Below the pieces are notes generated by a model that saw only the letters and a program-made list of their open reading frames with translations, did no database searches and was not told the DNA's origin. Positions 10,261-64,000 of a stretch of DNA of 64,000 bases are shown piece by piece (the first letter of the stretch is position 1; each line of letters opens with the position of its first letter). The DNA lies in the NCBI GenBank assembly GCA_038087875.1, contig JAXLNO010001347.1, positions 124,001-188,000 on the forward strand, written 5' to 3'. Both the position numbers and the translations under genes were made by a program. Source of the DNA: Malacoraja senta (Eukaryota).

Positions 10261-11469
10261 AACCAAACTCAATTATGAACAAATGGTGATTCATTTCTAA
10301 GTCAGGATGGATCCCAGGTCAGGTTCCCACACATCTGCTGACCTTGTTGTTCTTGTGCTTGAGATGTTGAGTTTGGAATGTTCTGATGGACTAGACGACA
10401 CGTATCTGCAGTGTGTTTTGTCACTGGTTGAAGCTTGTGGTGCAGTGAATAAACGAGGAAATGAAATCGAGCATTGTGCAATCAACAACAGACAATCACT
10501 TTTGACTTTATAATGGAAGGATGGTCACTAAAGTACCAGATCTTGATTATTGAGTACTCCACATCTTCCAGGCACCTAACATTGATTTACCTTAATCGGG
10601 TTACTTGGATCTGCATAAGGAATGGGAACAGCTTCAAACAATCTACTTGATTGTCGTTAATTAATTTTATTAATAATATCATAGAGTCATAGAGTGATAC
10701 AGTTTGGAAACAGGTCCTTCGGCCCAACTCGCCCACACCGGCCACCAATGTCCCAGCTACACTGGTCCCACTTGCCTGCGATTGTCTAACTGTTTCTTAA
10801 AAGATAGAATAGTCCCAGCCTCAACTCCCTCCTCTGGCAGCTTGTTCCATACACCTACCACCCTTTGTGTGAAAATGTTAACCCTCGGATTCCTATTAAA
10901 TCTTTTTCCCCTTCACCTTGAACCTATGTCCTCTGGTCCTCGATTCCCCTACTCTGGGCAAAGTCTCTGTGCATTGAATAACAGTTGATTGCGTTATCAT
11001 TTCAATGTGTGCTGATCTTTCAGGAAACTTTCCAAGTCAATCCATGTTCATCACACTCAGTCACTTTGAGGTAACATTGGCTGGGCAGGTTGTCCCTTAT
11101 GGTAATCTTGATAAGGAATGTCTGGCCAAGTGTACAATGGCCAATTAATTCATGAAATCAGATTCAAGTTGGGGCTGTGGACCAGTGTCTGTTCCATGCA
11201 AGATTAATCCTGATATTGTGAACTTTACACTAATACCAAATAATGTGGGCTAAACCCTGCAGCTCCAAACCAGTGCTGCCACCAAAGCAATAGGTTATAA
11301 GGTCAAGTTAAATCTCTACATTGTTTACAACTTTGGAGTTTTGATTTATGCAAAATGTTAGTGGAAATGTGGTAACTCTTGTGTATTGTCTCAATGTAAT
11401 CTATATTTCCTGTAGTCTTGTACTAAAGTATGATTGTCCTTGTGTATTGTAAATGTTTGACAGAACTGT

Positions 11470-12415
11470 AGGGGCGTCAGGGCGGCGTCAGGGCTACGTC
11501 TTGTCACCCTGGTTATTCTCACTCTACACAATTCAACTCGCATCCCAGTATAGTTCAGTTAAAATATATAAATACGCAGATGACACAACCATCATAGGTC
11601 TCATCTCTAACAACAACGAAACAGAATACCGCACTCAAACAAACAAAGCAGTCACTTGGTGCACAGATAATAACCTCTTACTCAACACATCAAAAACACA
11701 TGAACTTATCATTGATCTCAGACGTAAGGCACAACCCAAGACCCCCCTACTCATCTCTGGCAAACCCATATCCACCACTGACTCATTCAAATTTCTTGGC
11801 ACTCACATAAGCAATAACCTCAAATGGAAAATCAATTCAGATCACATTTATAAAAAAGCCAACCAAAGACTTTTCTTTCTCCGTCAGCTCAAGAAGTTCA
11901 GAGTGAGGAAACATCTCCTAATCCGATTTTACACAGCCATCATCCAAAGCATGCTCACTTCATCAATAACAGTTTGGTACAGCAGTCTAGACACTCACTC
12001 CCGTAATAAACTACAGCGCATTGTCAACAAAGCATCCAAAATCATCAGCACTTCCCTCCCATCAATAGATTCACTCAATCTCAAACGGTCCGTGTCAAGG
12101 GTGAAGAAAATCATTTCTGATCCCTCCCACCCAGCTCACCACATCTTCCACCCGCTGCCGTCAGGAAGGCGCTACAGCTCACTGCCCGCCAAAACATCAC
12201 GATTTAAAAACAGTTTCTACCCATATGCAATTCGAACTCTGAACACTCTATGACAACATCACACAGCCACCTCGTGCATGTACTGTATACTGTATGTTGT
12301 GTTTTATGTTATGTTTGATGGGAATCAGCCTAATCAGCCTATTGTGTAACATCCTGAACATGAATTCCACCAGCTTGACTGTGTGGTTATTAAATAATCT
12401 GAATCTGAATCTGTA
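11470..12415 (+). mobile_element. Rex1/Babar-clade LINE 3' fragment
   Basis: 266-aa ORF with LSPWLFSLYT, KYADDTTIIGLI, FKFLGTHISNNLKW and ANQRLFFLRQLKKF, followed by a 3' UTR with an (ATCTGA)n tail. Confidence 0.88.
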
Positions 12416-24439: not shown

Positions 24440-24925
24440 CATAGAACATAGAACAGTACAGCACAAGAACAGGCCCTTTGACCCACAATGTTTGTGCCGA
24501 ACATGATGCCAAGACCAATTGTTATCTGCTTGAACATAATCCATATCCATGCATTCCCTGCATATACATGTGCCTATCTAAAAGTCTCTTAAATGCCACT
24601 ATCATATCTGCTTCCACCACCACCCCCGGCAGCACATTCCAGTCACTCACCACCCTTGGCGTAAAACACTTGTCCTGCACATCTTTTTTAAACTTTGCCA
24701 CTCATTGTAAAGCTATACCTGCTCTTGTTTGATATTTCCTTCCTGGGTAAAAAGTCTGATGGTCTACCCTATCTCTACTCCTCCCAGTTTGATATATTAC
24801 TGTCAGGTCTCCCCTCAATCCCCGACATTCCAGAGAAAACAATCCAACTGTCCAGTCTGTCCAACTTCTCCCTGTGGCTAATACCCCACTAATCCAGGCA
24901 TCATTCCGGTAGACCTCTGCATCCC
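24440..24925 (-). mobile_element. Old CR1 3' fragment overlapping the class I stop codon
   Basis: Minus strand GCAGAGGTCTACCGGAATGATGCCTGGATTAG...TTGTTTTCTCTGGAATGTCGG matches the CR1 3' region; compare GTAGAGGTTTACAAGAATGATGCC at about 20364. Confidence 0.75.
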
Positions 24926-25127
24926 AATGGAAGTTGATTGTGCTTCATGGTCACTGCAGTCGTCTCCTGGTCTCTGCTGTTGTCAGCTGGTCCCTGTTCA
25001 TTGAAAGGTTTTATCTTTTTCCTCTTCTTCCAGCAACCAATTCCAAGGATGATCCCCAGGAGAATGAGAGGAACGATTACAGCTCCAGTCACGATCCTAA
25101 TCTTTATATCTTCTTTCGCTGCCATCT
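24901..25127 (-). CDS. Class I exon 5: connecting peptide, transmembrane segment and cytoplasmic tail
   Basis: CCAACAG acceptor; EMAAKEDIKIR-IVTGAVIVPLILLGIILGIGCW-KKRKK...GLPE*. The TM segment is followed by a basic stop-transfer stretch. Confidence 0.85.
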
Positions 25128-28100
25128 CTGTTGGCATATATAGTTCATTTTAAACATTTATTGATCAATTACGACTTTGAAATGATTTTATTATCTACAT
25201 TAAACTAGCATTGTTCACATCTAAATAAAAAGTAACAAAGTCTTAGATTTATGTAATTGTCCAGACGATGGATGTTTAAATAGATCAATGAAAAATCTTT
25301 GAAGTTCATATTAGCGTTGAGATTTTATCTGCAGCATTTAATTATGAATTTAAAGAATCAAACATATGTCAGAAATAAAGATTCAAGATACAAGATATTT
25401 TATTAGTCACATTCACATACACCCGGGTGTAGTGAAGTGAAATGCTTTTTGCCATTATGCAGCACACAAAAAAGAGAGAGAATACAGACACAACACCAAG
25501 ATAGTCTTAACACTGAACATCCCCCCACAATGGGTCCCACCATGAGGGAAGGCACAAAGTCCAGTCCCCAACCCCAGTTCACCCATAGTCGGGCCCATTG
25601 AGGCCTCCACAGTTGCCTCTACGGAGGCCCGATGTTCCAGGCCGTTCTCGCCGGGTGATGTTGTTCCGGCGTCGGGAGAGTCCTCCCAGCGGCCTGGGAA
25701 CCCTGGAACGGCCGCTTCCGCACTGGAGGCCGCGGCTTCCGAAGCCAACAAGGCCGCGCCGGTTGGAGCTCCACAACTGGCGCTCTCATCTAGAGATCCC
25801 AGGCTCCCGGTGTAAAGTTCAGCGCCGCTGCCCGCGGCTGGTCGCTCCACAGTCCCGCAGCTCCGCGATGTTTTCTCCAGCGATCCTCAGCTCACCGGAG
25901 CTCCAGCGTGGAGACCCGGGCAAGGCACCGCCCGCTCCGCGATAGCGCTCCAGCGCTGTGCCGAAGCCGAGGCTCTGGGCGGTACCCGACAGGAAACGCC
26001 GCTCCAGGCCCGCTGGTAGGCCGCGAGGACGGGTCGAAGCTGCAGCCCGGAGAAAAGCTGCCTCTCCGGCCAGGTAGGGACCCTGAAAGGTAGTTTCCCC
26101 CCTTCCCCCCCCACACAAAAAAGTCTAGAACTCCAAAACAATACACTTTACTGACTAAAATAAAAAATAAAGGTGAAAGGACAGACAGCTGCTGGCTGGG
26201 CAGCTGCACACAGGTCAGCGCCCCCTGGTGGTCTATTTGCAGTGTAGAGGTCAACAAGGCTATTTTCTTATGTTGACCATTGTTATTTTAGCAAATAAAA
26301 GTGAACCCATTTATAGTTGATAAAACTTCAAAGGTTTTAAACTTTGCTGATATTTCAATATCTGAGAGTTTGATATTCTCACACACACACACACTCTCTT
26401 TCTCTCCCTCCCCCTCCCCCTCTCTCTGTCTCACACGCATGAGCGCACACACACACACACACACACGCACACTCAGACATTAACACTACTGTCTATTTGT
26501 ACTGACCAGCAATTTTAACCATGTCATCTTGGCCCTGGTGTGAAGATATTTGCAGAGGTCTTGACTGGAACAAATAAGTCAGCTACAGAACAGGTGCTGC
26601 TACTTCAGACTGATAATGGGGTTGGATGTGGCACCACTATTGGCCTTTTGTGCAACTAACTACTATTAAAAAATTAGCTAGATGCCCAAGAAATAAGATA
26701 AGAGACCTTGGCCAGGATCAGCCTATCTTGCTTCCTACATTTGGATGTGTGAGTTAAGGGTGACATAAGAATAATTTTTACCATTGGAGCAGAAGTAGGC
26801 CTTTCAGTCCATTGAGTCTACTCCATCATTCAGTCATGGCAGATCTATTTTTACCTCTGAATCCCATTCTCCAGACTTCTCCCTGTAACTTTTGGCACCC
26901 GTACTAATCAAGAACCTATCATTCTCTGCTTTAAAATATGCAATGACTTGACCCACACAGCTGTCTGTATCAATGAATTCCACAGATTCACCACCCTGTG
27001 ACTAAAGAAATTCCTCCTCATCTCCATTTTGCAAGTACGTATTTTTATTGTGAGGCTGTGCTAGACTCTCCCATTACTGAAAACATCCTATCCACATCCA
27101 CTAACTGGGACTTTCATTAACTGGTAGGTTTCAGAGATTTTCCCCTCATCCTTCTAAATTCCCACGAGTAGAAGCCCAGAGACTTCAAACGTTCCTCATA
27201 CGTTAAACCAGGACATACTTCCTCTGGACCCTCTCCAAAGCCAGCACATCCTTTCTAATATGGAGCCCAAAACTGCTCACAATATTCCAAATGTGTCTTC
27301 ACCAGTGCCTGATAAATCCTCAGCATTATATCATTGTTTTTATATTCTAGTCCCCCCGAAATGAATGCTGGCATTGCATTTGCCTTACTTACCACTGACT
27401 CAATCTGCAAATGAACTATTTGGGAATCCTGCACTACTACTCCCACTTTGTAGCTCAGATTTCTGAATTCTCTCCCCATTTAGTAAATAGTCTATGTCTT
27501 TATTCCGACTGCCAAAATGTAAAACCAGACACTTGCTACACTGTATTCCATTTGGCTCTGCTTTGCCCACTTAGTGGAACTGCTGCCTTACAGCGCCAGA
27601 GACCCGGTTCAATTCTAACTACGGGTCCCGTCTGTACAGAGTTTTGTACCTTCTCCCCCGGACCTGCATGGGTTTTGCCTGGATCTCCGGTTTCCTCCCT
27701 CAGTCCAAAGACATACAGGTTTGTAGGTTAATTGGCTTGGTATAATTGTAAATTGTCCCCTAATAAGTAAGATAATGTAAGTGTGCAGGGATCGCTGGTT
27801 GACGCAGACTCGTGGGCCAAAGGGCCGGTTTCTGCGCTGTATCTCTTAAATTAAACCACATTCCATTGACTATCAATAATTCTGGGCAATTAGATAACCA
27901 CAAATTAATAATGGGTGGCACAGTGGCGTAGCGGTAGAGCTGCTGCCTTACTGCACCAGAGACCTGGGTTTGATCCCGACTACAGGTGCTGTCTGCAAGG
28001 ACATTGTATGTTCTCCCTGTGACTGCGTGGGTTTTCTCCGGGTGCTCCGGTTTCCTCCCACACTACAAAGGCATACAGGCTTGAAGGTTACTTGGCTTAG

Positions 28101-31100
28101 GTAAAATTGTAAATTGTCCCCAGTGTGTTGGTTAGTGTAAATGTACGGGATGATCACTGTTCAGCGAGGACTCAGTGAGCTGAGGGGCCTGTATCTGCAC
28201 CATATCTCTAAAGTCTAAAATCTAAATGCACAGCTTAGTTAAGAGTGTGTTGAGGCTGTTATCTCAGTCCAGGAGGTTTATTCTCTCAAGTGATCAGCCT
28301 CATTGACTTGCCACTTACCCTGTGGAACATTGACTCCCTGCAGCAGAGTTGCATGTTCAATGTAACAGGAGAATTTTGCCACATCTTCTCTACTCAGTTG
28401 AATTGTATTCTTCAGCTGGTAAGTCCCATCCCAATTGGGCAACAGATCACTGGATTCAGACTCGTGGTCTCCCTCACCATCCCTCAGCCACGTTACATCG
28501 ATGGCCCGTGGGTAGAAGCCTGTGACAAGGCAGGAGAGTCTCAGTGATTGTGACCCATCACGTTTAATCCCAATAAACACCTCAGGGGTTTCTGCAAGTG
28601 TAGGAAGCGTCAGAATCAGTGAAGACATGAACAAAAGCCTTCAATTGTAAGATCACTGCAACTCACCTCTTTCCCAATCAGTTTTTTCTCCAGCTGAACA
28701 AAGTTTCCAGCCTAGACCCAAAATGCTGGAATAACTCAGCAGGTCAGGCAGCATCTCTGGAGAGAAGGAATGCCCAGAGATGCTATCTGACCCACTGAGT
28801 TACTCCAACATCTTCTATCTTCGGTGTAAACCATCATCTGCAGTTCTATCTTGCACAAAGTTTACAGCCTTTTCTCTTTTCATTTTGCATTTCTGGCAAA
28901 ACAACAAAACATTTAGTTTCAATATCACTGACATGCTCCTTATCTTAGCACCAGACTTGAACTGACAGCGCAGATGTAAGGGGAATGCAGGCCCAATGGA
29001 GGAGTATAACTCACCATTGGGATTGATACTGTAGACATGATTGCTTCTACTTGTTCATGAATCTCAGCTGAATAATAACACTAAATATTCCAAGAGGGAA
29101 TGGGAGGAAGAAGTTCTTCAACCAGAGAACTGTTGGAAATTGGATGTCACCATCCCAAGGAGTAATAGAGGCAAATAGAGAATCTGATTGGGTTTCTGAT
29201 CAGCACAGCAACAGACACTTCAGGCACAAGGTCAATGCTAAACATAAGACCAAGATACATATCCCTCCATTTCCTGAATATCTATATGACTGTGGATAGA
29301 GGACACTGGTACAATATTTATCTTTCACTTGCACTTCCTACCCACTGGCTCCATCTAAGAGGCACGTTGCCAGACAATTTACTGATACCCACGTCGTAGA
29401 ACAGGGTGGCGAAGCGGTCGAGCTACTGCCTTACAGCGCCAGAGACCTGGGTTTGTTACTACCTACGGGTGCTTGTCTTTACAGAGTTTGTACGTTCTCC
29501 CTGTGACCTGCATGGGTTTTATCCGAGATCTTCGGTTTCCCCTCACACTCGAAAGACGTACAAATTTGTAGGTTAATTGGATTGGTATAAATGCAAATTG
29601 TCCCTAGTGTGTGTAGGATAGTGTTAGTGTGCGGGCAAGGCTGCTCGGTGCAGTCTCGGTGGGTTTCCGCGCTGTATCACTAAACTAAACTAAATAATTA
29701 CTCAAGTGACAGCCTGAAGTGCATGATATTTCCCACCTGATCTATCCAGGGGATATCCTCTGGCCCATCAGTCAGAGTGCCTACGTCGTGTACCTCTCCT
29801 CTGTAGTGCTTCTTGTCCACACTCCAGATATATCCGCAGCCACTTCACACAGTCCTTCTCCAGGAGATCTTTAAAATACTTCTTCATGAAGGTGTTGACG
29901 TTCCACCGATCTGCTAGCATCTGGAAATCTGGACGTAGTGCAATCCAGCGCATTCTGTCCTTGTCAAAAGCACAGGCATCCTCCCCATCATAACCCAGTC
30001 TGACAAACCCATCAGTGGAATTGTCACTGTCCACTTCACAGCCGCAGAAACCCTGCACAAAGCAAACAGCTGGGGCTGAGGTAGGGGTGGAGGATTTGTG
30101 TTGGGGAGAGTGGATGGAAGGGAGAGGCAATTTACAAATCAGTTCTCAGCATGGTACAAACAGGCATAACAGAACACAACATGGAGCTGTACAGCATAGG
30201 AGCAGGTTTAGCTCAGAGATACAGTGCGGAAACAGGCCCTTCGGCCCACCGAGTCCGCACTGACCAGTGATCCCCGCACATTAACAGTATCCTACACAGA
30301 CTACTTTTATTTTCCAGCTTTCTCCACCCTACTCCATCACTCTAAATGGTCCTGGTCTCATATGTTTTCTGTCCATTTTTCCACAGCATGCTGCCTGACT
30401 CGTTGAGTTCCTCCTGTTTGTTTTTAATTCAGATTGGCAGCATCTGCAGTTTGCTGTGACTCCATCTTAGTACAAATGATGATCAATGTGGATTCAGTGA
30501 GCAGAAGGGCCGGTTTCCATGATGTGTGACTCAATGACCCATGGTCTATATACTGAGGGCATGGACTAACCTCAAGTGTTGAGGGGGGAAGCTTTACTGT
30601 TGCGGATGTAACACTAAAGAAGTTTTGCTGTGTCAGAAGGGTAGAACTCAGATTCTGCACTTTCGTACATAAAGAACAGAGGAAGGAGTGCATTGTCAGA
30701 TGGGCAATGTTATACAGTGAACAGGTCAGTCTGAAGGTTAAGGCAATGCAGATGGGTAGTACATCAAGGCTGTTGCACTGTGTGGGATTGCTACACTCTC
30801 TGTGGATTGTTGCCAATATTGAGGGAATGCTGGATTAACAGAATATTATTGTTGAGGGAATACATCATAGTCACCATCAACCAGCTTAATCAAGGTCCCA
30901 TCTCTAGGTGATCAGGCTATAAATAAACTATGGTTTCTCCCTCATTCTAGCCCAATAAAACAGATGATCCAATCCATCCACTTTTTACTGGTGTTAAATA
31001 TCAAATGCTTAACCCATAAAGAGACTATCACCAGCCAACTGTTATCAATGGGTGTTCAGCAGTTAGGATACATTAAATATAGACGATGGGCCGTGTCTCT

Positions 31101-34100
31101 ATCAAAATGTGATGGAGTAAATGTCTGAAACAGCATCAATGGTGCTGAAGTGAAAAAGGTTGAGAGTTTCTGGTTCCCCTACTGCCTCAGGAGACTAAGG
31201 AAATGCGGCATCTCCAATGACTCTTACAAACTTCTACAAATGTGCCATAGAAAGCACACTGACAGGTTGCATCACAACTTAGTTTGGAAAGAGTTCTGCC
31301 CAATACCGCTGGAAATGGCAGGGAGGTGGAGATGTAGCACAGTCGATCACACAAACATGATTCCCCACCAGTGAATCCATCTGTATTTCAACTGGCTCAG
31401 GAAAGCAGACAACATAATCAAAGATTCATCCCGCTCTGGTCATTCCTTCTTCTTCCTGCAGAAGGTACGTAAGCATTAAAGCGTGCACCACCAGACTCAG
31501 TAACTGTTTCCTCCCCTATGTTATCAGGTTTCTGAACAGTCCTCCCTTATGCTAGGGTTCACCTCAACCCCATTGTAGACACTGGACTTTGTCTCTGGCA
31601 CTGGTGCCTTACAATGCTGAGAACTACATTCTGCACTCTTTGCTCTACCTATTGTACGAGTTTGGTTTGATTGTATTTATGAATAGTTTTCTTTGATGTG
31701 ATTGACTAACATGCAAAAAAAGTGTATCAGAGAATCATGTGACAGCAACAAAACTAAAACAAAATCCATTTGTGCCATCACTGGGTGTCTACCCCAGGTC
31801 CGGTCACGACACTTACTCGAGATACCATGTTGCTGTTGGTAGACTATCTCAGCATTTCCTCTGACAATCCCATGAAAACCTGCAACTGTGATGGCCATTG
31901 AAGCCCAGTGATCCTGCGGGAAAGACTGGGCCATCCATCGCTGTCTGGGAATAGCCCGCTCTAGTGTGCCGTCAAAATATGCTATCTGGAGGTCATCCAA
32001 CATTGCTACCATACTGTACTCAGGCAGCTCACTCAATCCATGGTTCAACAGGTAGTAAAATGCAAGATGGTGAAAATCTGCAATGCATAAACAAAAATAA
32101 GTATGATTGTATCATTCACTGAAAATAACTAAGTTATTAATGCTAAAACTGATAACAATACAATAACTTTGAATAAGGGAGTCACAAGGACCTGCAGATG
32201 CAAGTGCTGGAGGAACTCAGTGGGGCAGGCAGCATCAATGATCAGGTGACAATTTGGGTCAGGAGCCTTTAGTTTAGTTTTTAGCTTAGAGATACAGCAT
32301 GGAAACAGGCCCTTCGGGCCACTGAGTCCACACTGACCAGCAACCCCCACACAATAACACTATCCTACACACACTAGGGACAATTTACATTCTACACCAA
32401 GCCAATTAACCTACAAACCTGTACGTCTTTGGAATGTGGGAAGAATCCGAACATCTCGGGAAAAACCCACACGGTAATGGGGTGAATGGACAAACTCCGT
32501 ACAGACAGCATCCGTAATCAGGATCCAACCTGGGTCTATGGTGCTGTAATCGAGATAAGGGAGCAAGTCTACTGCTGCACCACTGAGCCTTCTTCAAGAG
32601 TTGGCATGATGGGCTCTGATACCTACTCCACCAATTATGGTCGAGGTATTGAATGATCCTATTGGATTGTTTCCCATCTTCAAAGATCTATTATTGTCTA
32701 TCATGTCGATAGGTTCTACTAGTTACAATATTCCAAAATGTGAAGAATATTTTATTATATTAAGAAACTGGACAATGTCAAGGAGAATTTATAGAATCAT
32801 AGAGAGGTAAAGTCAAAGAGTCATACAGCAGGGAATCAGGGCCTATGGCTCAACTTGCCACACCAACCAACATGCCCCATCTACACTGCCTGTATTTCAT
32901 CAGTACATAAGGTCTAGGAGAATAATTAGGCCAGTCAGCCCATCGGCCATTCAATCATGGCTGATCTATCTCTCCCTATCAACCACATTCTCCTGCCTGC
33001 ACCCCATAACCCTTGAAACCTGTACTGATCAAGAATCTGTTAATCTCCACCTGAGAAATATCCATTGACATGGGCTCTACAGCTGACTGAGGCCCATATC
33101 CTTATAAGCCTATCTGATTAAATGCTTCTTAAATGTCGTGACAGTACGTGCCTGAACTACCTTCTCCGGCAGTTCATTCAGTACACCCACCACCTTTTGT
33201 GTAACACAGCTACGCCTCAGGTTCCTATTAAATCATTCCCCCCTCATCTTAAACTTATGTCCTCTGGGTACAGCACATTAAAAGGCCCTTTAGCCCACCA
33301 AGTTCGTGGTAACCATCAAACACCTATTTGTACTTGTAGTACGCTAACCCATTTAATATTTGCCAATCTCCCATTAACACCTCCCTCATCCCCTCCACCA
33401 ATTCTAATACATATGCATGATCAATTCACACTGGCCAACTTACCTTTCAGCCCGGCATTTTTGGGACGTGCGGGGAAACTGGAATAACCATAGGAAATAA
33501 CCATGGGGGGGAGGGTGGAGGTGGAGGGTGGAGACTGTAATAAACAGGGCCTAAATACTGGAGTAACTCAGTGGGTCAGGCAGCATCTCCAGAGAAAAGG
33601 AAAAGGTGACGTTTCGTGTCGAGACCCTTCTTCAGACTGAGAGTCAGGGGACAGAGAACCGAGAGATATGAAAAAGTACAATGAAATATATGCACCCCCG
33701 ACTCTGTCTGATGCAGTGTCTTGACCTGAAACTCCACCTATTCCTTTTCTCCAGCGATGCTGCCTGACTTGCTGAGTTACTCCAGCCTTTTGTATCTATC
33801 TTCGGTGTAAACCAGCATCTGCATCAGCAGTCAGAAGAAGGGTCTCGACCCGAAACGTCACCCATTCCTTCTCTCTAGGGATGCTGCCTGTACTGCTGAG
33901 TTACTCCAGCTTTATTGTCTATCTTCGGTTTAAATCAGCTTCTGCAGTTCCTTCTTACACATCTGCATTCCTTCCTACACTTGTCTCAACTGAAACATCA
34001 TCTAACCATGTTCTCCAGACATACTGCCTGACCTGCTGAATTACTCCAGTATTTTATGTGTATTAACCAGCATGTGCAGTTTCTTGTTTCCACACGAACA

Positions 34101-35850
34101 AGCAGTATTTGTTCTGTGATAAAGATTACACGCAGCACACCAGACAGTGCCAAAGTTCATGTGTTTAAGTGAAGTGAGAAGGGGCCCCGAGGGCAGAGTT
34201 AGAAGTGTCTGTTTCAGTGTTACCAGGAGAAACATAAGAAGGCTAAGAGTGCAATAGTAACGATAAAATCCATGTGGCTTCGCAAAACACTCCACAGCCA
34301 AGGAGTTTTGTTTTATATGTTATTATTTCAACACGGCCATCACCATTATATTTACTTCCATCTGATAAGAATGGGATTAAACTTTCAGGACGAGCATCCG
34401 ATTACAGGTTTGTAATCTCTAAGCCTTGACGAATGTCAGAATAGTTAGAAAGGTACCATTGTGTGGGAAGAAATTGCTCATCAGATTCCCATTAAATCTT
34501 TCCCCCCTCAATTTAAACCTATGTCCTCTGGTTCTCGATTCTGTAATCTGTTGAACATCTTGCCCACTTGCAAATTTCCAGATTGAGATTGATAGATTTT
34601 AGTTCATTAAGGGTGTAATGGGCTGGAGTTCGGCCACAATGTCTGTGCCGATCATGATGTCAAGTTAAACTAAACTCTTCATGCTTGTACATGATTCATA
34701 TCCCTCAATTCCCTGCATATCCACGTGCCTATCCTCAAGCGTCTTAAATCTCATTATCGTCTTCTGGGGAAGTGGTGGTGGGGTAATGGATAGGGTCTGC
34801 AGGACAGGAAGCATGCAACAAACAACAAGATGGCAACAACATTAACACAACATTGATTGGTCATTTAATGCAGGCTGAATTTTACCATCATGTGGGTGCC
34901 TAACACCAGCTGAGGAAATCTTGGAGAGGTGGGACACCTACTAATGCAGAAGTCCCTTCTTTATTTAAAGTGCACATCACCGGTTTACCTGAATTCTGTC
35001 TGAGGCATTAGTGCAAGGACAGATTGGACAAACATGGATTGTTTTCTCTTGTATACTGGAGGTTGAAGGGAGACCTGATGAAAGTGCATAACATGGTGAG
35101 AGGCACAGACAGAGTGGACAGCCAGAACCTTTTTCCCAGGGTGGAAATGTTGAAGACCAGAGAACATCACTTTAAGGTTGGAGAAGCAATGTTCAAAGGA
35201 GATGAGCGGAGCAAGTTGTTTTATGTGGAGGGTGGTGGACATCTGTAACGCGCTGCCAGTGGTGGTGGTGATGGTGGCAGATATAACAGTTACATTTCAG
35301 AGGCTTTTGGATAGGTACATAGTTAGGCAGGGAATGGCCAGATACAGATCACATACAGGTAGAGGAGATTAGTTTATTTTGTTCGGCACAGACATTGTGG
35401 GCCGAAGGTAGACACAAAATGCTGAGGTAACAGCGGGTCAGGCAGCATCTCTGGAGAAAAGGAATGGGTGACGTTTTGGGTCGAGACCCTTCTTCAGACT
35501 GAAGGACTGAAGGACCTGCTCCTATGCTGTATTGTACTATGCTCTATGTTCATTATTTACATGTATTCAGTTCTTCTCTTCAATGGATTACCAAGGTAAC
35601 CATAGTATATATAACCTCACAGGAACCTTCACAACTCAGGAATGACCGTTACCCAAAATTATTAATACATTCAATTCAATCATTCAATTAATACATCCAA
35701 GACAATGAACCCAGGGCAAACACAGGGACTGTGCAACAGTAAATAGAATCAGTTTTGTTGTTTCCTCAAAGTTCACAAGTAGAAAGAGCATTGCTTACCA
35801 GACGAGACAGTGGCCACACCGTAAGTGTTGAGTAAGGTAAAAAGAAGCAT
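24901..35850 (-). CDS. Nonclassical MHC class I-like heavy chain gene, 5 coding exons, 362 aa
   Basis: Exons 35850-35799 (52 bp), 32077-31817 (261), 30069-29794 (276), 28591-28319 (273) and 25127-24901 (227) total 1089 bp. They join in one open frame with phase-1 GT-AG introns and give the order leader, alpha1, alpha2, alpha3, TM/cytoplasmic. Confidence 0.93.
25380..26231 (-). mobile_element. Non-autonomous GC-rich retroelement-like repeat with a CTCF consensus at its 5' end
   Basis: Minus-strand 3' tail AATAAAAATATCTTGTATCTTGAATC; 5' end CCACCAGGGGGCGC. Similar to 18770-20002. Confidence 0.6.
26790..27540 (-). mobile_element. Degraded CR1 3' fragment
   Basis: ALVKTHLEYCEQFWAPY in ORF 27255..27479. 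Confidence 0.8.
27915..28225 (+). mobile_element. HE1-type SINE, preceded by another copy at about 27570-27855
   Basis: GGGTGGCACAGTGGCGTAGCGGTAGAG head with the family body and tail. Confidence 0.85.
28319..28591 (-). CDS. Class I exon 4: alpha3 (Ig C1-set) domain
   Basis: ETPEVF...LSCLVTGFYPRAIDVTWLRDG...LLPNWDGTYQ...FSCYIEH. TTGCAG acceptor, G|GTAAGT donor. Confidence 0.95.
29400..29695 (+). mobile_element. HE1-type SINE in class I intron 3
   Basis: Family head, body and (CTAAA)n tail. Confidence 0.85.
29794..30069 (-). CDS. Class I exon 3: alpha2 domain
   Basis: TVCFVQGFCGCEVD...GYDGED...RWIA...DRWN...DCVKWLRIYL...EALQRR. 276 bp using the CCCCAG acceptor; an in-frame alternative acceptor 6 nt upstream would start the exon at 30075. 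G|GTAC donor. Confidence 0.95.
31120..31530 (+). mobile_element. Degraded Rex1/Babar fragment in class I intron 2
   Basis: YCLRRLRKCGIS and, in a shifted frame, YKCAIESTLTGCIT. Confidence 0.7.
31817..32077 (-). CDS. Class I exon 2: alpha1 domain
   Basis: DFHHLAFYYLLNHGLSELPEYSMVAMLDDLQIAYFD...AIPRQRWM...DHWASMAITVAGFHGIVRGNAEIVYQQQHGIS. TTGCAG acceptor, A|GTAAGT donor, 261 bp. Confidence 0.93.
32270..32590 (-). mobile_element. HE1-type SINE in class I intron 1
   Basis: Reverse-complement family copy. Confidence 0.85.
33545..34085. repeat. Cluster of inverted and tandem short Penelope-derived repeats
   Basis: One minus copy (33550-33700) followed by three plus copies with GATGCTGCCTG...GAGTTACTCCAG. 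Hammerhead-like cores at about 33608-33635 (minus) and 33832-33859 (plus). Confidence 0.85.
35799..35850 (-). CDS. Class I exon 1: signal peptide MLLFTLLNTYGVATVSS
   Basis: ATG at 35850, 52 bp, G|GTAAGC phase-1 donor that joins exon 2 to give Asp1. A TTAAATA TATA-like element lies at about 35873-35879. Confidence 0.8.
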
Positions 35851-35949: not shown

Positions 35950-36022
35950 AATTATTGGTCCATGTGTACACAAACCTGATAACCAGATCCAATGGGAATG
36001 AGACCACTTGTCACTAATTGCC
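35950..36022 (-). promoter_or_regulatory. Class I proximal promoter with X-like and Y/CCAAT boxes
   Basis: Minus strand GGCAATTAGTGAC (36022-36010), then TCTCATTCCCATTGG, then a CCAAT box at 35958-35954. Confidence 0.4.
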
Positions 36023-38489: not shown

Positions 38490-40040
38490 AAATTATTTTT
38501 TTTTTTAATTTTTATTTATTAGAAGTACATTACATTACAACCACATACATTAGTACTCGTCATTTATATCTTCTTACAATTAATGTACTCCATTTATTTT
38601 TTTACACTAGAAAAGGAAAAGATTAAAAGAAAGAAGAAAGTGAAGGAAAAAGTGAAAGTGTAGAAAATGTGACAACAAAAAAGGACGAAGACCCTATAAG
38701 AGCAAAATTAAAAACAAAAGAAAAAGAGTTAAGGAATAGGCCCTAGAAAAGAAAGAGAAAGAGAAAGAGGAAAAAGAGAGAAACAAATATTTTTATGAGC
38801 ATTACGTAAATGGGACATACCAACTCTTCAACTATCATCCCCCCTTACCTGACCTGAATTTTTTTTAAAGTACTTTTGCACCCTATATTTGTAATAATTC
38901 TATAAATGCAGACCACGTCAGGTGGAAGTGATCTGGTTTACCTGCTAGGAGGAGTCTTATCTCTTCTAGGTGTAATGTTTCAAACATATTTGAAATCCAC
39001 ATATTTATAGTTGGTATTGGAGCCTTCTTCCAACATTTTAGAATTAGCTTTTTTCCAGTTATTAACCCATAGTCCATTAGTTTCTTTTGAAACACATTTC
39101 GTTCTGGACCACCTTCCGTTATTCCGAAGATAATCCATTCTGCTTTGGGTATCAGTCTTGTTTTAAATAACTTTGTAAAGATTTCAAAAATTTAATTCCA
39201 AAATTTTTGAATTTTTGTACAGAAAACGAATGAGTGCGCTATAGTAGCTTCTTGGGATTGACATTTATCACAAATAGATGAAACATTTGGGAAAATTTTA
39301 TGAATTTTAGTTTTCGAATAATATAATCTATGTAAAATTTTAAATTGTATTAAAGTGTGTCTTACATTAATCGAGCATTTATGCACGTTTAATAAGTGTT
39401 CATTCCAACTTTCCTTTGAAATTTTAATAGCTAACTCTTGTTCCCAGTCTCTTCTGATACCCTCCGTAGATGGTATTTGTACATTTAAGATAATATTATA
39501 CAAATATGATATTAAGTTTGCTGATTCAGCTTTTATTTGCATTGCCTCGTCCAATACATCTACTGGGTTATTATAATGATCTTTTGTATATTTTTTCAAA
39601 TAGTCGCATATTTGAAAATATTTAAAATATTGATTATTTCCGAGTTTATATTTTATTTGTAATTGTTGAAATGAAAGTAATTTTCCAGTTTCATACAAGT
39701 CACCAAGCGTTTTAATTCCTAGTCTATCCCAATGTGTAAAAGCTTTATCTATAATAGAAGGACTAAACGAAGGGTTATTAACTATAGGTAATAAAAGTGA
39801 TAAATTTCTTAATTTTAAATTTTGTTTTATTTGTTTCCAAATTCGGATTGTACTATGAATAATTGGGTTCTTATTATAATTTATGTTATTCAATTTCATT
39901 GGAGAAAGGAGAATCGCTCCAATGTTTCTAGAGGAGCAATCCTCTTTCTCCATTACAATCCAGTCCACTTGCTGGGCGGAGTTATCCATCAGTTGAATCA
40001 TATTTTTACAGTCGATAACTACCTCCTTCAAATTCACCTT
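38490..40040 (-). mobile_element. L1/Tx1-clade LINE 3' fragment (ORF2 C-terminus, 3' UTR, poly-A)
   Basis: 281-aa ORF with IQFKILHRLY...CDKC...HSFVFC Cys-rich domain. A T-rich tract at about 38490-38520 is the poly-A tail. Confidence 0.88.
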
Positions 40041-57900: not shown

Positions 57901-60900
57901 TTAAAGACCTGGATGAGGGAATGAAGGCAATATTCTCCAAGTTTGCGGATGACACTAAGCTGGGGGCAGTGTTAGCTGTTGAGGAGGAAATGCTATGGAG
58001 ACTGCAAGGTGACTTGGATAGGCTGCATTCGCTTTCTTCACTGCCTGCTGCACCTGCATGCCTACTTTCAATGACTGGTGTACCATGACACCCAGGTCTC
58101 GCTGCATCTCCCCTTTTCCTAGTCGGCCACCATTTAGAAAATAGTCTGCTTTCCTGTTTTTGCCACCAAAATGGATAACCTCACATTTATCCACATTATA
58201 CTGCATCTGCCAAACATTTGCCCACTCACCCAGCCTATCCAAGTCACCTTGCAGTCTCCTAGCATTCTCCTCACAGCTAACACTGCCCCCCAGCTTAGTG
58301 TCATCCGCAAACTTGGAGATATTGCCTTCAATTCCCTCATCCAGGTCATTAATATATATTGTAAATAGCTGGGGTCCCAGCACTGAGCCTTGCGGTACCC
58401 CACTAGTCACTGCCTGCCATTGTGAAAAGGGCCCGTTTACTCCTACTCTTTGCTTCCTGTTTGCCAGCCAGTTCTCTATCCACATCAATACTGAACCCCC
58501 AATGCCATGTGCTTTAAGTTTGTATACTAATCTCTTATGTGGGACCTTGTCGAAAGCCTTCTGGAAGTCCAGATACACCACATCCACTGGTTCTCCCCTA
58601 TCCACGCTACTAGTTACATCCTCGAAAAATTCTATAAGATTCGTCAGACATGATTTACCTTTCGTAAATCCATGCTGACTTTGTCCAATGATTTCACCAC
58701 TTTCCAAATGTGCTGCTATCCCATCTTTAATAACTGACTCTAGCAGTTTCCCCACTACCGATGTTAGACTAACTGGTCTGTAATTCCCCGTTTTCTCTCT
58801 CCCTCCCTTCTTAAAAAGTGGGGTTACGTTTGCTACCCGCCAATCCTCAGGAACTACTCCAGAGGGATCATTTTGTGGGAACTGTTGAAGGGATCATTGC
58901 CCGTCTGGTTTCTGTATGTGTGTGGGCTCTGCACTCTATTGCACTCTACTGCCCCCTTCTTATCCCAGATTATTGTTGTTTTATCCTTTGGTAGGATGTG
59001 AAAAGCATTGTGGACCAAGCCCTGAAACTGTACAGCGCTGACAGGGTTGGATTGGTGGATTATGCACTGGAATCTGCTGGTAAGTATCAGACAAAAGCCC
59101 AGGCCAAGTAAAACTCTGAAGGTAACAGACTGAAAGGGTGTTGTGTGGGCTGGCACTTTAGTCATGTTTGACTTGCTCCTGTGGAATGGGGTCTCTTTCA
59201 CACTGGGCAATATGTCCTGAATAGACAAGTACAAATCTATGTTGACAGTACAGGTTTTCCCAGAGCTGCTGAGGTTCACACTGCTGAATGTTAATTTAAC
59301 TTGTAACTGCTTGATGTTGCGCCAGCCACAACTCATTTAAAGGCCGAGCCATCGATGGGATGGACTTGCCCTGGGGCACCATCGGCCATCTTCATTCTGT
59401 CCACTGCTCCACCATCCCTGCAAACACATTGGTTACTCTCTTGTGCACTCTCTCTGAAGCTTCATGCCTTTCTGAGGGCAAGGCAGCCAGGACTGGATGC
59501 ACCACTCCAGCTGTGGCCAAGCCTGTGTTTTACAAAGTTCCCCATCACTTCTTTGCTCTTGTACCCAGAGCCGTTATTTATAAAGTACAGACGTTTTTAA
59601 ACAACATCCTAAACTTCCTTCTTTCAGTAAACTAGGCACATATATCACCCACGTGTGTCAGAAGGATGTGAAGGTCTGATGAAGGGTCTCGACCTGAAAC
59701 GTCACCCATTCCAGAGACACTGTTGTTTCTTCACTCCTTTTAGAATTGTGCCCTCTAGTTTACATTGCCTTATCACTCCTCCCAAAATGAAATATTTCAC
59801 ATTTGAATTACAGCTGTTCAAACCCTATTCTGTATTTGCCTCCAATTCCATGAATATCCCCAGTTCACAGTATCATCTACAAATCTGGAACTCCAAGTCA
59901 TTTAATGCGTATGAAGAAAAGATGGGTCTTATTCTGCCCTCTGGCCAATTTTACAACTTACAATTAACCTACAAACCTGTACATCTTTGGAGTGTGGGAG
60001 GAAACCAGAGCACCCGGAGAAAACCCATGCGGTCACAGGGAGAATGTACAAACTCCGTACAGACAGCACCCGTAGTCAGGATCAAACCCAAGTCTCTGGT
60101 GCTGTCAGGCATGAGGTCTACCGAACGGTCACTGTGCTGCCCTGATTTAATTGCTCCCCTCTTCTGTTGGTTAGCCAGTTTTATTCCTTGAAGCAAAGTT
60201 TACATTGCAGAGAAAGTGAGAACAAAATAGATAGACTGGAGACCAGGAGACATTTGAGATCAATGTCGATACCAGCTGGATCGGTGAGGATGCAACAAGT
60301 GGCAGACGAATGAAATCTTAAACACCTGTAGAAGTGCAAGAAAAGAAAACAAGCTCATGGTTTGAAATGTGGATAGAAGCTTGGTTCTTCTCAAGCTAAC
60401 ATTGGACAATTGGAATTGTGTAGAAAGCTGAAGATCTACTTTAGGTTTCAGCCATCTTGCAGAATGACCAGGATGCTGCCTGGATTAGACAGAATGCTAG
60501 AATAGAATATTAGCTATAAGGGGAGGGTGGACAAACGGAGCGTCAGAGGCTGAGACAAGACCTGATAGAAGTATATAAAATTATGAGAGATATATAGATA
60601 GAGTAGGCAGTCTTTCCCCAGGTTGGAAATGTCAAATGCGCGAGGGCATAGAGTTAAGGTGAGAGGGGGGATGTTTAAAGGAGATGTGTGAGGCAAGTTT
60701 TTCTTGCACAACTGTAGGTGTGTTGTCAGGGGAGGTGGTGGAAGCAGATATAATAGTAATCTTTAAAAGGCATTTGGACAGATACATGTACAGACAGGGA
60801 GTAGAGGGATGTAGACCATGTCCAGTCAGATGGGATGAGTTAGGCTGACATCATGGTTGGTGCAGACACAGTGGGACAAAAGGGCCTGTTCCTGCGATGT

Positions 60901-62492: not shown

Positions 62493-64000
62493 TTAAACAA
62501 AATCGCTATAGCGGACAGGTGGTTTGACAAGACGTCCCGACCGGGTTCGCATCTCGCCATCCTCCCTTCCGGCAGGAGGAAGAGGCACCGATGGGGGCAG
62601 ACGAGCCTGAAAGGGGGAAACGGGAGGAGACGGAGGAGACCGCGGCACCAAACCCGGAGGTGATGCGGGATCAGGAGCGGGCAGAGCGCGGGCAGGCGAG
62701 CGAGGACTAGTCGGAGCAGGGTGGGACGGAAGGAGTTGAGGAGGCGGAGAACGTTGCATGTTAGGAAGGACGGGCAGATCAACGCCCGGACGCGAAGTCG
62801 GCAGTGGGGGAGCAAACGGATCCGCGGCAGGAGGACGCGGCTCGTTGACGAGCCGAAGGTGCTGGCGGGAACGACGGTAAATGGCTCCCGCATGGTCGAC
62901 GAGATAGGACCTGGGCGACCCAGCTAAGCCGACGACAGTAGCGAGCTTGGAGTGACCGGAAGTGGTCTGCATACGGACACCTTGACCGGGGAAGAGGCGC
63001 GGCAGCGGGTGGCAGGACCTGTCATGGGAACGCTTTTGGACATCGTGCCTGAAGGCAATGCGTTTCTGAACCGCCACAGGTGGGAGGACGGAGGGTATGA
63101 GGGAGCGCTGGGCCACCGGGAGCGGGAGCCTGGTAGCGCGAGACATGAGCCGCTGAGCAGGAGAACCCATGGCGGAGTCGCGGGAAATGTTGCGGAGGTT
63201 GAGGAGGGCCAGATGGAAGTCGGAGTTAATGCCACCACACTGTTCCAGCAGGTGCTTCGTGCTGCGGATGGCACGCTCGGCCAGACCGTTGCTTTGCGGG
63301 TACTCCGGGCTGCTGGTGAAATGGCGGAAGTTCCATCTGGAAGCGAACGCTTTAAACTCGGCGCTCGTGAACTGGCTGCCATTGTCCGACTGCAGGCTTG
63401 CCGGGGGGCCAAAAGTGCCAAAATGAGGGTATAACCTGTCGATGATGGCCGAAGAGGTTAGGGAGTGCAGCCGGTCGACCACAAACCAGCTGGAGTAGGA
63501 GTCAACGAGAACCAGGAAGTGTTTGCCTCGCCACTCGAAAATGTCGGCGGCAAGCGCCATCCAGGGCAGTTCGGGCGCGGGCTGCTGCAGAAGCGGCTGA
63601 CGCTGCTGGTGGGGGGCGAGGCTGTTGCAGGTGGAACACGAGGAGACCCTCTCCCGGATGTATTTGGCCATACCCGGCCAATAGAACTGGCACCGGGCGA
63701 GAGACACGGTGGCTTCGGCCCCAGGATGACCGCGGTGAGCGACTTGAAAATAGTGGTCGTGCAACGCCGCGGGCACCACCACCTTGTGACCCTTCACCAC
63801 CACGCCGTCGTGTAGTACGAGCTCATCACGGACCAGGAAGTAGGGCACGGCGCCAGCCGGCAGTGCGGAACGACGGTCGGGCCAGCCCCGCTGGATGACG
63901 GCAGACAGCTGTTGCAGGGCAGGGTCATTGGTAGTGTGTTCAACCAGGGACTTCATCTGCTGTGAAGGGACGATGTTCATTTGGAGCACCATTAGATCAG
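62493..64000 (-). mobile_element. Ty3/Gypsy LTR retrotransposon pol C-terminus (integrase), open at the window edge
   Basis: Uninterrupted frame of at least 499 aa with H-x-x-H/C-x-x-C zinc finger (AHRGH...CSTC), ADIF, SDNG and SNGLAE catalytic motifs, GSPAQRLM, and a C-terminal RTRSGRLVKPP. Confidence 0.95.

Follow-up and report, generated by a model that had tools for sequence, protein, structure and literature searches.

A five-exon gene for a nonclassical major histocompatibility complex class I (MHC-Ib) heavy chain was found on the minus strand of a 64,000-nucleotide stretch of the genome of the skate Malacoraja senta (GenBank assembly GCA_038087875.1, contig JAXLNO010001347.1, positions 124,001 to 188,000; this whole stretch is called the window, and all positions are counted from its first nucleotide). 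The gene extends from 35850, the first base of the ATG, to 24901, the end of the stop codon, and judged from its sequence it is intact and probably functional. Together with its orthologues it forms a lineage for which we use the working name lineage X and which carries the label 'MR1-like' in RefSeq. With a probability of roughly 60% we consider that lineage X arose before the split of sharks and rays as the sister of the nonclassical lineage UGA, persists as a single- or low-copy orthologue in rays and sharks, and presents a hydrophobic ligand other than a peptide, the last point being read from the sequences. The kind of gene is already known, as it is an elasmobranch MHC-Ib of the CD1-like UFA/UGA group, and the sawfish orthologue is catalogued as MHC-Ib. 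What is new is that X is a lineage separate from those of both solved structures, the most conserved of the three, and that it has no sorting tail.

The gene model was rebuilt from the sequence and comprises a coding sequence of 1089 nucleotides (nt) for 362 amino acids (aa). Its start and stop agree exactly with the 362-aa spliced frame proposed in an earlier note on this DNA, which was written from the letters alone and counted five splice junctions, but five coding exons give only four. The exons are arranged as follows.

Positions 35799-35850, minus strand: exon 1, 52 nt, ATG and signal peptide MLLFTLLNTYGVATVSS, phase-1 GT donor.
Positions 31817-32077, minus strand: exon 2, alpha1 domain, 87 codons, AG acceptor and GT donor, weak match to Pfam MHC_I.
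Positions 29794-30069, minus strand: exon 3, alpha2 domain, 92 codons, Pfam MHC_I at 1.9e-16, with C101, C164, an extra C99 and an NST sequon.
Positions 28319-28591, minus strand: exon 4, alpha3 immunoglobulin (Ig) C1-set domain, 91 codons, Pfam C1-set at 4.9e-15.
Positions 24901-25127, minus strand: exon 5, connecting peptide, transmembrane helix, 42-residue cytoplasmic tail and stop, with the same single-exon layout in Leucoraja.

All four introns are of the GT..AG type and in phase 1, as is characteristic of MHC and Ig-superfamily genes. The product combines the features of the MHC class I superfamily, namely an alpha1-alpha2 platform, a C1-set domain, a transmembrane anchor, one domain per exon, the C101-C164 pair and the cysteines of the Ig disulfide. 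A chance reading frame is excluded because the locus of the little skate Leucoraja erinacea (L001, JAMYXN010000384.1) keeps the same five exons, the same splice sites and an intact frame of 362 codons. Nucleotide identity between the window and Leucoraja is 98, 97.7, 96.4, 93.4 and 92% in exons 1 to 5 and about 90% in the introns. The RefSeq model of the Leucoraja gene, XP_055486430 (P0001), covers it only in part: the leader exon (L001:100-151) is left out, and the model runs 36 nt into intron 3 (L001 12983-13020), thereby adding GTRPRHSDWWNG. In the window the same read-through of intron 3 meets a stop codon, and therefore the canonical donor must be used. A second X-like locus of Leucoraja, on a separate 122-kb contig, is represented by XP_055486496 (P0142), which covers only part of alpha2 and alpha3, reads through an intron and has a changed Ig-cysteine context (SPC for FSC); this locus may represent a pseudogene, a duplicate or a haplotig.

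When the alpha1 exon was used for an exhaustive HMMER search, 128 representatives were obtained, with the Leucoraja protein at the top (94% identical over the exon). Using P0001 as the query, orthologues of lineage X were found in at least 11 further species of rays and sharks, from the genera Pristis, Mobula, Hypanus, Pristiophorus, Heptranchias, Scyliorhinus, Stegostoma, Hemiscyllium, Chiloscyllium, Mustelus and Cetorhinus. Identity to P0001 is 54-72% within this set and then falls to 36% or less. The description of the gene as highly divergent was thus overstated, as many elasmobranchs have RefSeq-annotated genes to which it is orthologous and well conserved. Over the ectodomain, the window protein is 87% identical to that of Leucoraja and 59-78% to the ray and shark orthologues, compared with 34-43% for UGA, 26-34% for UFA and 31-37% for other shark class I proteins.

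Two nurse shark crystal structures gave the reference points for UGA and UFA. PDB 9ch4 ('Crystal structure of shark nonclassical MHC class I, UGA', released 2026-03-18) is nearly identical to a protein of the zebra shark Stegostoma (P0236; 568 bits, 268 aa), which defines lineage A, and PDB 8gm8 ('Crystal structure of shark nonclassical MHC class I, UFA', released 2024-11-27) represents P0249 of the nurse shark, the protein by which lineage B is defined. Among PDB sequences, 9ch4 was the top match of the alpha1 exon (E 1e-21) and the strongest single-domain match of alpha3 (74 bits). In a maximum-likelihood tree of 70 sequences X, UGA and UFA each form a clade with support 100/100 that holds sharks as well as rays, and within X the rays and sharks split as in the species tree. 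X is the sister of UGA (98/91), UFA joins the two with weaker support (86/78), and a three-copy clade of the elephant shark Callorhinchus (P0160/169/175) remains outside (83/72). Because X and UGA are separate clades that both contain sharks and rays, they are paralogues older than the shark-ray split, and X is neither UGA nor UFA. Trees of the single domains, a check suggested in the earlier note, recovered X as monophyletic in all three (support 99, 99 and 91) and paired it with UGA in alpha1 (91) and alpha2, while alpha3 did not resolve the pairing. That note had also considered the gene as a member of a described lineage, which would have removed its novelty; it lies outside both the UGA and the UFA clade, which answers the question of the lineage in part.

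Several closer assignments were rejected. 9ch4 cannot be regarded as an X orthologue, as the X protein of Stegostoma scores 214 bits against it and the UGA protein of the same species 568 bits. Membership in UGA fails since X falls outside clade A with the 9ch4 orthologues, and membership in UFA since clade B with P0249 excludes X, in line with the low identity given above. A relationship to MR1, at which the RefSeq name and the alpha2 scores hinted, was set aside as K43 is absent, the tree itself containing no MR1 sequence.

To describe the groove we transferred HLA-A2 numbering via the classical UAA of the houndshark Triakis (P0063) and via sturgeon and lungfish class I, using conserved anchors. 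Classical class I molecules hold the peptide termini with Y7, Y59, Y/R84, T143, K146, W147, Y159 and Y171. The skate protein has F7, H59, Q84, L143, R146, W147, L159 and Y171 at these positions and thus keeps only two of the eight (W147 and Y171), with K146R as a conservative replacement; Triakis UAA has all eight in the same alignment. The replacements are invariant across the X orthologues. Position 123 is Ala, and the groove face of the alpha1 helix consists of M63, T66, V67, F70, I73, V74, N77, I80 and V81. Q96, D122 and P235, which contact beta2-microglobulin, are kept. Both the list of replaced anchors (including A123) and the apolar alpha1 positions given in the earlier note were reproduced, as were the three beta2-microglobulin contacts, and its statement that the classical peptide-binding set is lost holds.

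Across lineage X the groove floor carries three small invariant residues, G97, C99 and A123, in place of the classical R97, Y99 and a mostly aromatic residue 123. C99 has no conserved partner; the canonical pair is that of C101 with C164, and conservation does not extend to the other extra cysteines. H59, R146 and D163 are invariant as well. The only conserved N-glycosylation sequon is the NST in the first alpha2 loop, and the sequon at N86, typical of classical class I, is absent from the X proteins.

The hydropathy of the groove was compared over 46 lining positions, for which we give the number of apolar and charged residues and the mean Kyte-Doolittle hydropathy (KD).

Window protein: 30 apolar, 2 charged (R146 and D163), KD 1.13.
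Lineage X: 27-31 apolar, 2-3 charged, KD 0.98-1.39.
Classical class I of shark, sturgeon and lungfish: 20-22 apolar, 5-8 charged, KD -0.20 to 0.16.
CD1b of lemur: 28 apolar, 4 charged, KD 1.17.
UGA: 3-7 charged, KD 0.27-0.94.
UFA: KD 0.48-1.49.

On these sequence-based values the groove is hydrophobic, as had been proposed, since it is far more apolar than that of classical class I and about level with CD1b. Among X, UGA and UFA the median apolarity is highest in X, although individual UFA members are equally high. We found that X is by far the most conserved of these three lineages in both groove and top face. Twenty-six of the 46 groove positions are invariant in X (12 orthologues) versus nine of 46 in UGA (15 sequences), and of the receptor-facing positions on top of the helices 11 of 23 are invariant in X versus none of 23 in UGA. 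Between skate and the sharks and other rays, groove identity amounts to 70-91% in X, 63-83% in UGA and 26-44% in UFA. Outside the groove, the corresponding identity in X is 67-77% for the rest of alpha1-alpha2 and 52-73% for alpha3.

For structure prediction, also suggested in the earlier note, the alpha1-alpha2 part of the Leucoraja protein (P0001:1-181), whose 46 groove residues are identical to those of the window protein, was folded on its own with AlphaFold2 from a 50-sequence alignment. The model has a mean predicted local distance difference test score (pLDDT) of 93.5 and a predicted template modelling score (pTM) of 0.87 and shows the canonical eight-stranded floor with two helices. 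Foldseek placed 9ch4 at rank 1 with a template modelling (TM) score of 0.90 and a root mean square deviation of 1.7 A; MR1, classical class I of grass carp, chicken and duck, and chicken YF1*7.1 were tied about 1.5 Z below it, and CD1 was absent among the top 50 structural matches. The modelled platform looks like a groove of classical width as in UGA and not like the raised helices of CD1. The parallel to CD1, EPCR and ZAG drawn in the earlier note therefore holds for the CD1b-like hydropathy but is not supported for the architecture, where UGA, MR1 and classical class I are closest.

The closest known system, in sequence and in structure, is UGA. Like X it is present in sharks and rays and is its tandem neighbour. 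It shares with X the alpha2-helix face M152, Y155, F156, L159, L160 and D163 as well as G97, G69, F70 and W133, and 21-23 of the 46 groove residues are identical. The differences comprise C99 for F99, V/F81 for W81, H59 for Y59, W167 for L167 and I/V80 for E/R80, and X has fewer charged residues in the groove (2-3 vs 3-7), a much more conserved groove and top face, and a tail without the YxxPhi motif. UFA shares with X the weakly supported super-clade (86/78), a position in the MHC-Ib cluster of the sawfish and an apolar groove, but unlike X most of its members have Cys for W133, and W147 and Y171 are lost. Both UFA and UGA have been described as CD1-like, with crystal structures and mass spectrometry reported to suggest lipids comparable to those of CD1d (PMC12562908, a 2025 review citing personal communication), and the CD1-like character of UFA has also been reported elsewhere (PMC10751288).

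CD1 itself is similarly class I-like with an apolar groove (KD 1.17 in CD1b and 1.13 in the window protein). It is nonpolymorphic and presents lipids, as has also been proposed for the X/UGA/UFA group. In contrast, CD1b sits on a very long branch of the tree and X has no endosomal sorting motif; the CD1-type Pfam model MHC_I_3 scores 23.5 bits on the skate protein, below its cutoff of 35. Regarding MR1, its Lys43 forms a Schiff base with the ligand. This lysine is not kept in X, where the skate has Ala and the zebra shark Cys, so that the name 'MR1-like' is not backed by the residue that defines MR1, and the apolar groove of X differs from the aromatic and basic cradle of MR1. Chicken YF1*7.1 (PDB 3p73/3p77 and 9eb2-9eb6) has 26% identity and belongs to a bird lineage derived from classical class I, and the resemblance is one of analogy only.

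Most UGA tails examined end in a YxxPhi motif (YQTI, YNVI, YENI, YNTV, YESI) and UFA has almost no cytoplasmic tail. The tails of the X orthologues are longer, variable and polar, and neither YxxPhi nor dileucine motifs are present in them. From these features we propose the following mode of action. The X protein would pair with beta2-microglobulin and reside at the cell surface, where a groove as wide as in classical class I, comparable to those of shark UGA or chicken YF1*7.1 and deepened in its centre by G97 and C99, may hold one conserved hydrophobic ligand such as an acyl chain, a lipid or another apolar small molecule. A polar head group could be contacted by R146, Q84 and N77 at one end or by D163 and H59 at the other. 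As the tail lacks a tyrosine sorting motif, loading would be expected at the surface or in the secretory pathway and not in late endosomes, and trafficking would then resemble that of CD1a more than that of CD1b-d or UGA. The ligand might be shown to a receptor that is itself conserved and could be a semi-invariant T-cell receptor or one of the natural killer (NK) type.

A number of observations weigh against the presentation of a non-peptide ligand by a functional X gene. The ratio of nonsynonymous to synonymous substitution rates (dN/dS) between the two skates is 0.50, a noisy value based on 54 substitutions that indicates moderate constraint only. Searches of sequencing runs for spliced RNA, with the alpha1-alpha3 stretch and with the alpha2 exon alone, matched genomic DNA runs only. 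The groove positions were assigned from a sequence alignment in which one indel of the alpha2 helix (positions 150-152) is ambiguous. The predicted platform resembles CD1 no more closely than it does class I molecules that bind peptides or metabolites, and the hydrophobic lining could equally pack shut.

A more specific version of hydrophobic-ligand presentation takes X as a third member, so far without a name, of the CD1-like UFA/UGA group of sharks, monomorphic and evolving like MR1 or CD1d, with a groove and receptor face near-frozen since before the shark-ray split and with one conserved hydrophobic ligand, possibly tethered via the free, invariant Cys99 of the floor, for invariant T cells of cartilaginous fish. 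We regard this combination as tentative and rather doubtful.

It is unlikely that X holds no groove ligand at all and acts as a surface ligand or receptor in the manner of MIC, HFE, FcRn or ZAG-type molecules, with the apolar residues packing a closed groove. The apolar groove and the 11 invariant helix-top positions would also fit a conserved protein-protein interface, but conservation is higher at the groove positions than elsewhere in alpha1-alpha2, and the invariant small residues of the floor (G97, C99, A123) enlarge a cavity rather than fill it. In addition, the helices of the model superpose on those of the ligand-bearing UGA and MR1 at 1.8-2.0 A, and lipid binding has been reported for UGA, the sister lineage.

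Non-canonical peptide presentation is a further possibility. HLA-E and Qa-1 present leader peptides and chicken YF1*7.1 binds N-acylated peptides, and in the same way X might present a narrow set of hydrophobic or lipidated peptides without the usual hydrogen-bond network at the N- and C-termini. This too appears improbable, given that six of the eight terminus residues are replaced and have been invariant for about 300 million years (as estimated from the shark-ray split), that the groove has only two charged residues and the N86 glycan site is missing, and that the nearest relatives are reported as lipid binders (PMC12562908).

That the gene is an unexpressed or decaying copy that looks intact is very improbable: the RNA result, the lack of an annotated Malacoraja protein among the relatives retrieved and the dense transposon debris of the region would agree with it, but two skate species share an undamaged frame of 362 codons with four canonical introns, identity is 96-98% in the alpha1 and alpha2 exons compared with about 90% in the introns, and from skates to sharks the orthologues remain intact and their groove residues nearly invariant.

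Regarding the genomic surroundings, a leader exon of UGA type (MREVVREMMLFILLSFFRIQGAQA, phase-1 GT donor) lies at 883-955 on the minus strand, about 24 kb downstream of X and in the same orientation. It matches the N-terminus of the Leucoraja UGA protein P0010, and the remainder of that gene lies to the left of the window. No second class I gene body was found in the 64-kb window by tblastn with the skate protein. The rest of the window consists of retroelement debris with reverse transcriptase and integrase open reading frames (ORFs).

Positions 62493-63992, minus strand: 499-aa ORF with integrase zinc-binding and rve core domains.
Positions 57955-58755, minus strand: reverse transcriptase fragment.
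Positions 11453-12253, plus strand: reverse transcriptase fragment.
Positions 39192-40037, minus strand: reverse transcriptase fragment.

Inspection by eye of the sequence before exon 1 showed a CCAAT box and, in inverted form, an ATTGG of the Y-box type on the minus strand at 35954-35958 and 35989-35993, about 105 and 140 bp 5' of the ATG, and no clear interferon-stimulated response element could be read there. The genomic runs that match the skate gene come from its own group and from three related species; their contigs span the introns, and no exon-exon joints occur in them; the joints reported there fall in repeats. At 28345, in the alpha3 exon, one of two contigs from a related species (run X6, organism D) lacks two bases, which suggests a frameshifted allele or a paralogue in that species.

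In the sawfish, X (LOC127585976) is located on chr34 at 13.956 Mb, between B2M (13.08) and COL11A2 (15.13). The gene order, in which the genes next to X were assigned to UFA or UGA via their RefSeq names, is BRD2, B2M, one 'Q10-like' Ib gene, three UFA-type genes ('RLA 11/11-like', 'HFE homolog'), a GPR139 array and TRIM39, followed by X, three 'F10-like' genes that correspond to the three sawfish UGA proteins, COL11A2 and RXRB. The tandem order of X followed by UGA is thus common to the skate window and the sawfish.

As to the name of the lineage, Almeida et al. 2020 reportedly described UDA as a single-copy lineage in the main MHC-Ib cluster. X is present as one gene in the window and one in the sawfish, there within the Ib cluster between B2M/BRD2 and COL11A2/RXRB, and matches the description of UDA in copy number and location. 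The Callorhinchus clade contains the only relatives from that genus. Grouping X with it, as would fit a UDA present in all cartilaginous fish, costs 9.4 log-likelihood units and is disfavoured but not formally rejected (p-AU 0.077, approximately unbiased test). We see roughly even odds that X is the published UDA or that it is unnamed or has been lumped with UGA. A second single-copy MHC-Ib gene of the sawfish, LOC127585849 ('Q10 alpha chain-like', NC_067438.1, 13.17 Mb), lies beside B2M and is an alternative candidate for UDA; it did not come up in the searches made here. Cluster look-ups of the relatives returned RefSeq-style names only and no U-lineage names, and among the shark proteins retrieved none was named UDA. 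Verissimo et al. 2023 flag the sawfish X and the class I genes of its cluster as 'MHC-Ib', with the exception of the 'HFE homolog', and their supplements use this label without lineage names. In the sevengill shark Heptranchias perlo 11 entries at 90% identity or more were noted over at least seven contigs (cluster of P0133); X may have expanded in this species, or the assembly may have duplicated it, and elsewhere X looks single-copy.

The structures of UFA and UGA have been deposited only recently, and X adds to them a third lineage, the sister of UGA. With its groove and receptor-facing surface it is a good candidate for a system of conserved ligand and conserved receptor. The question at stake is whether the presentation of lipids or small molecules to innate-like T cells may be as old as the first jawed vertebrates.

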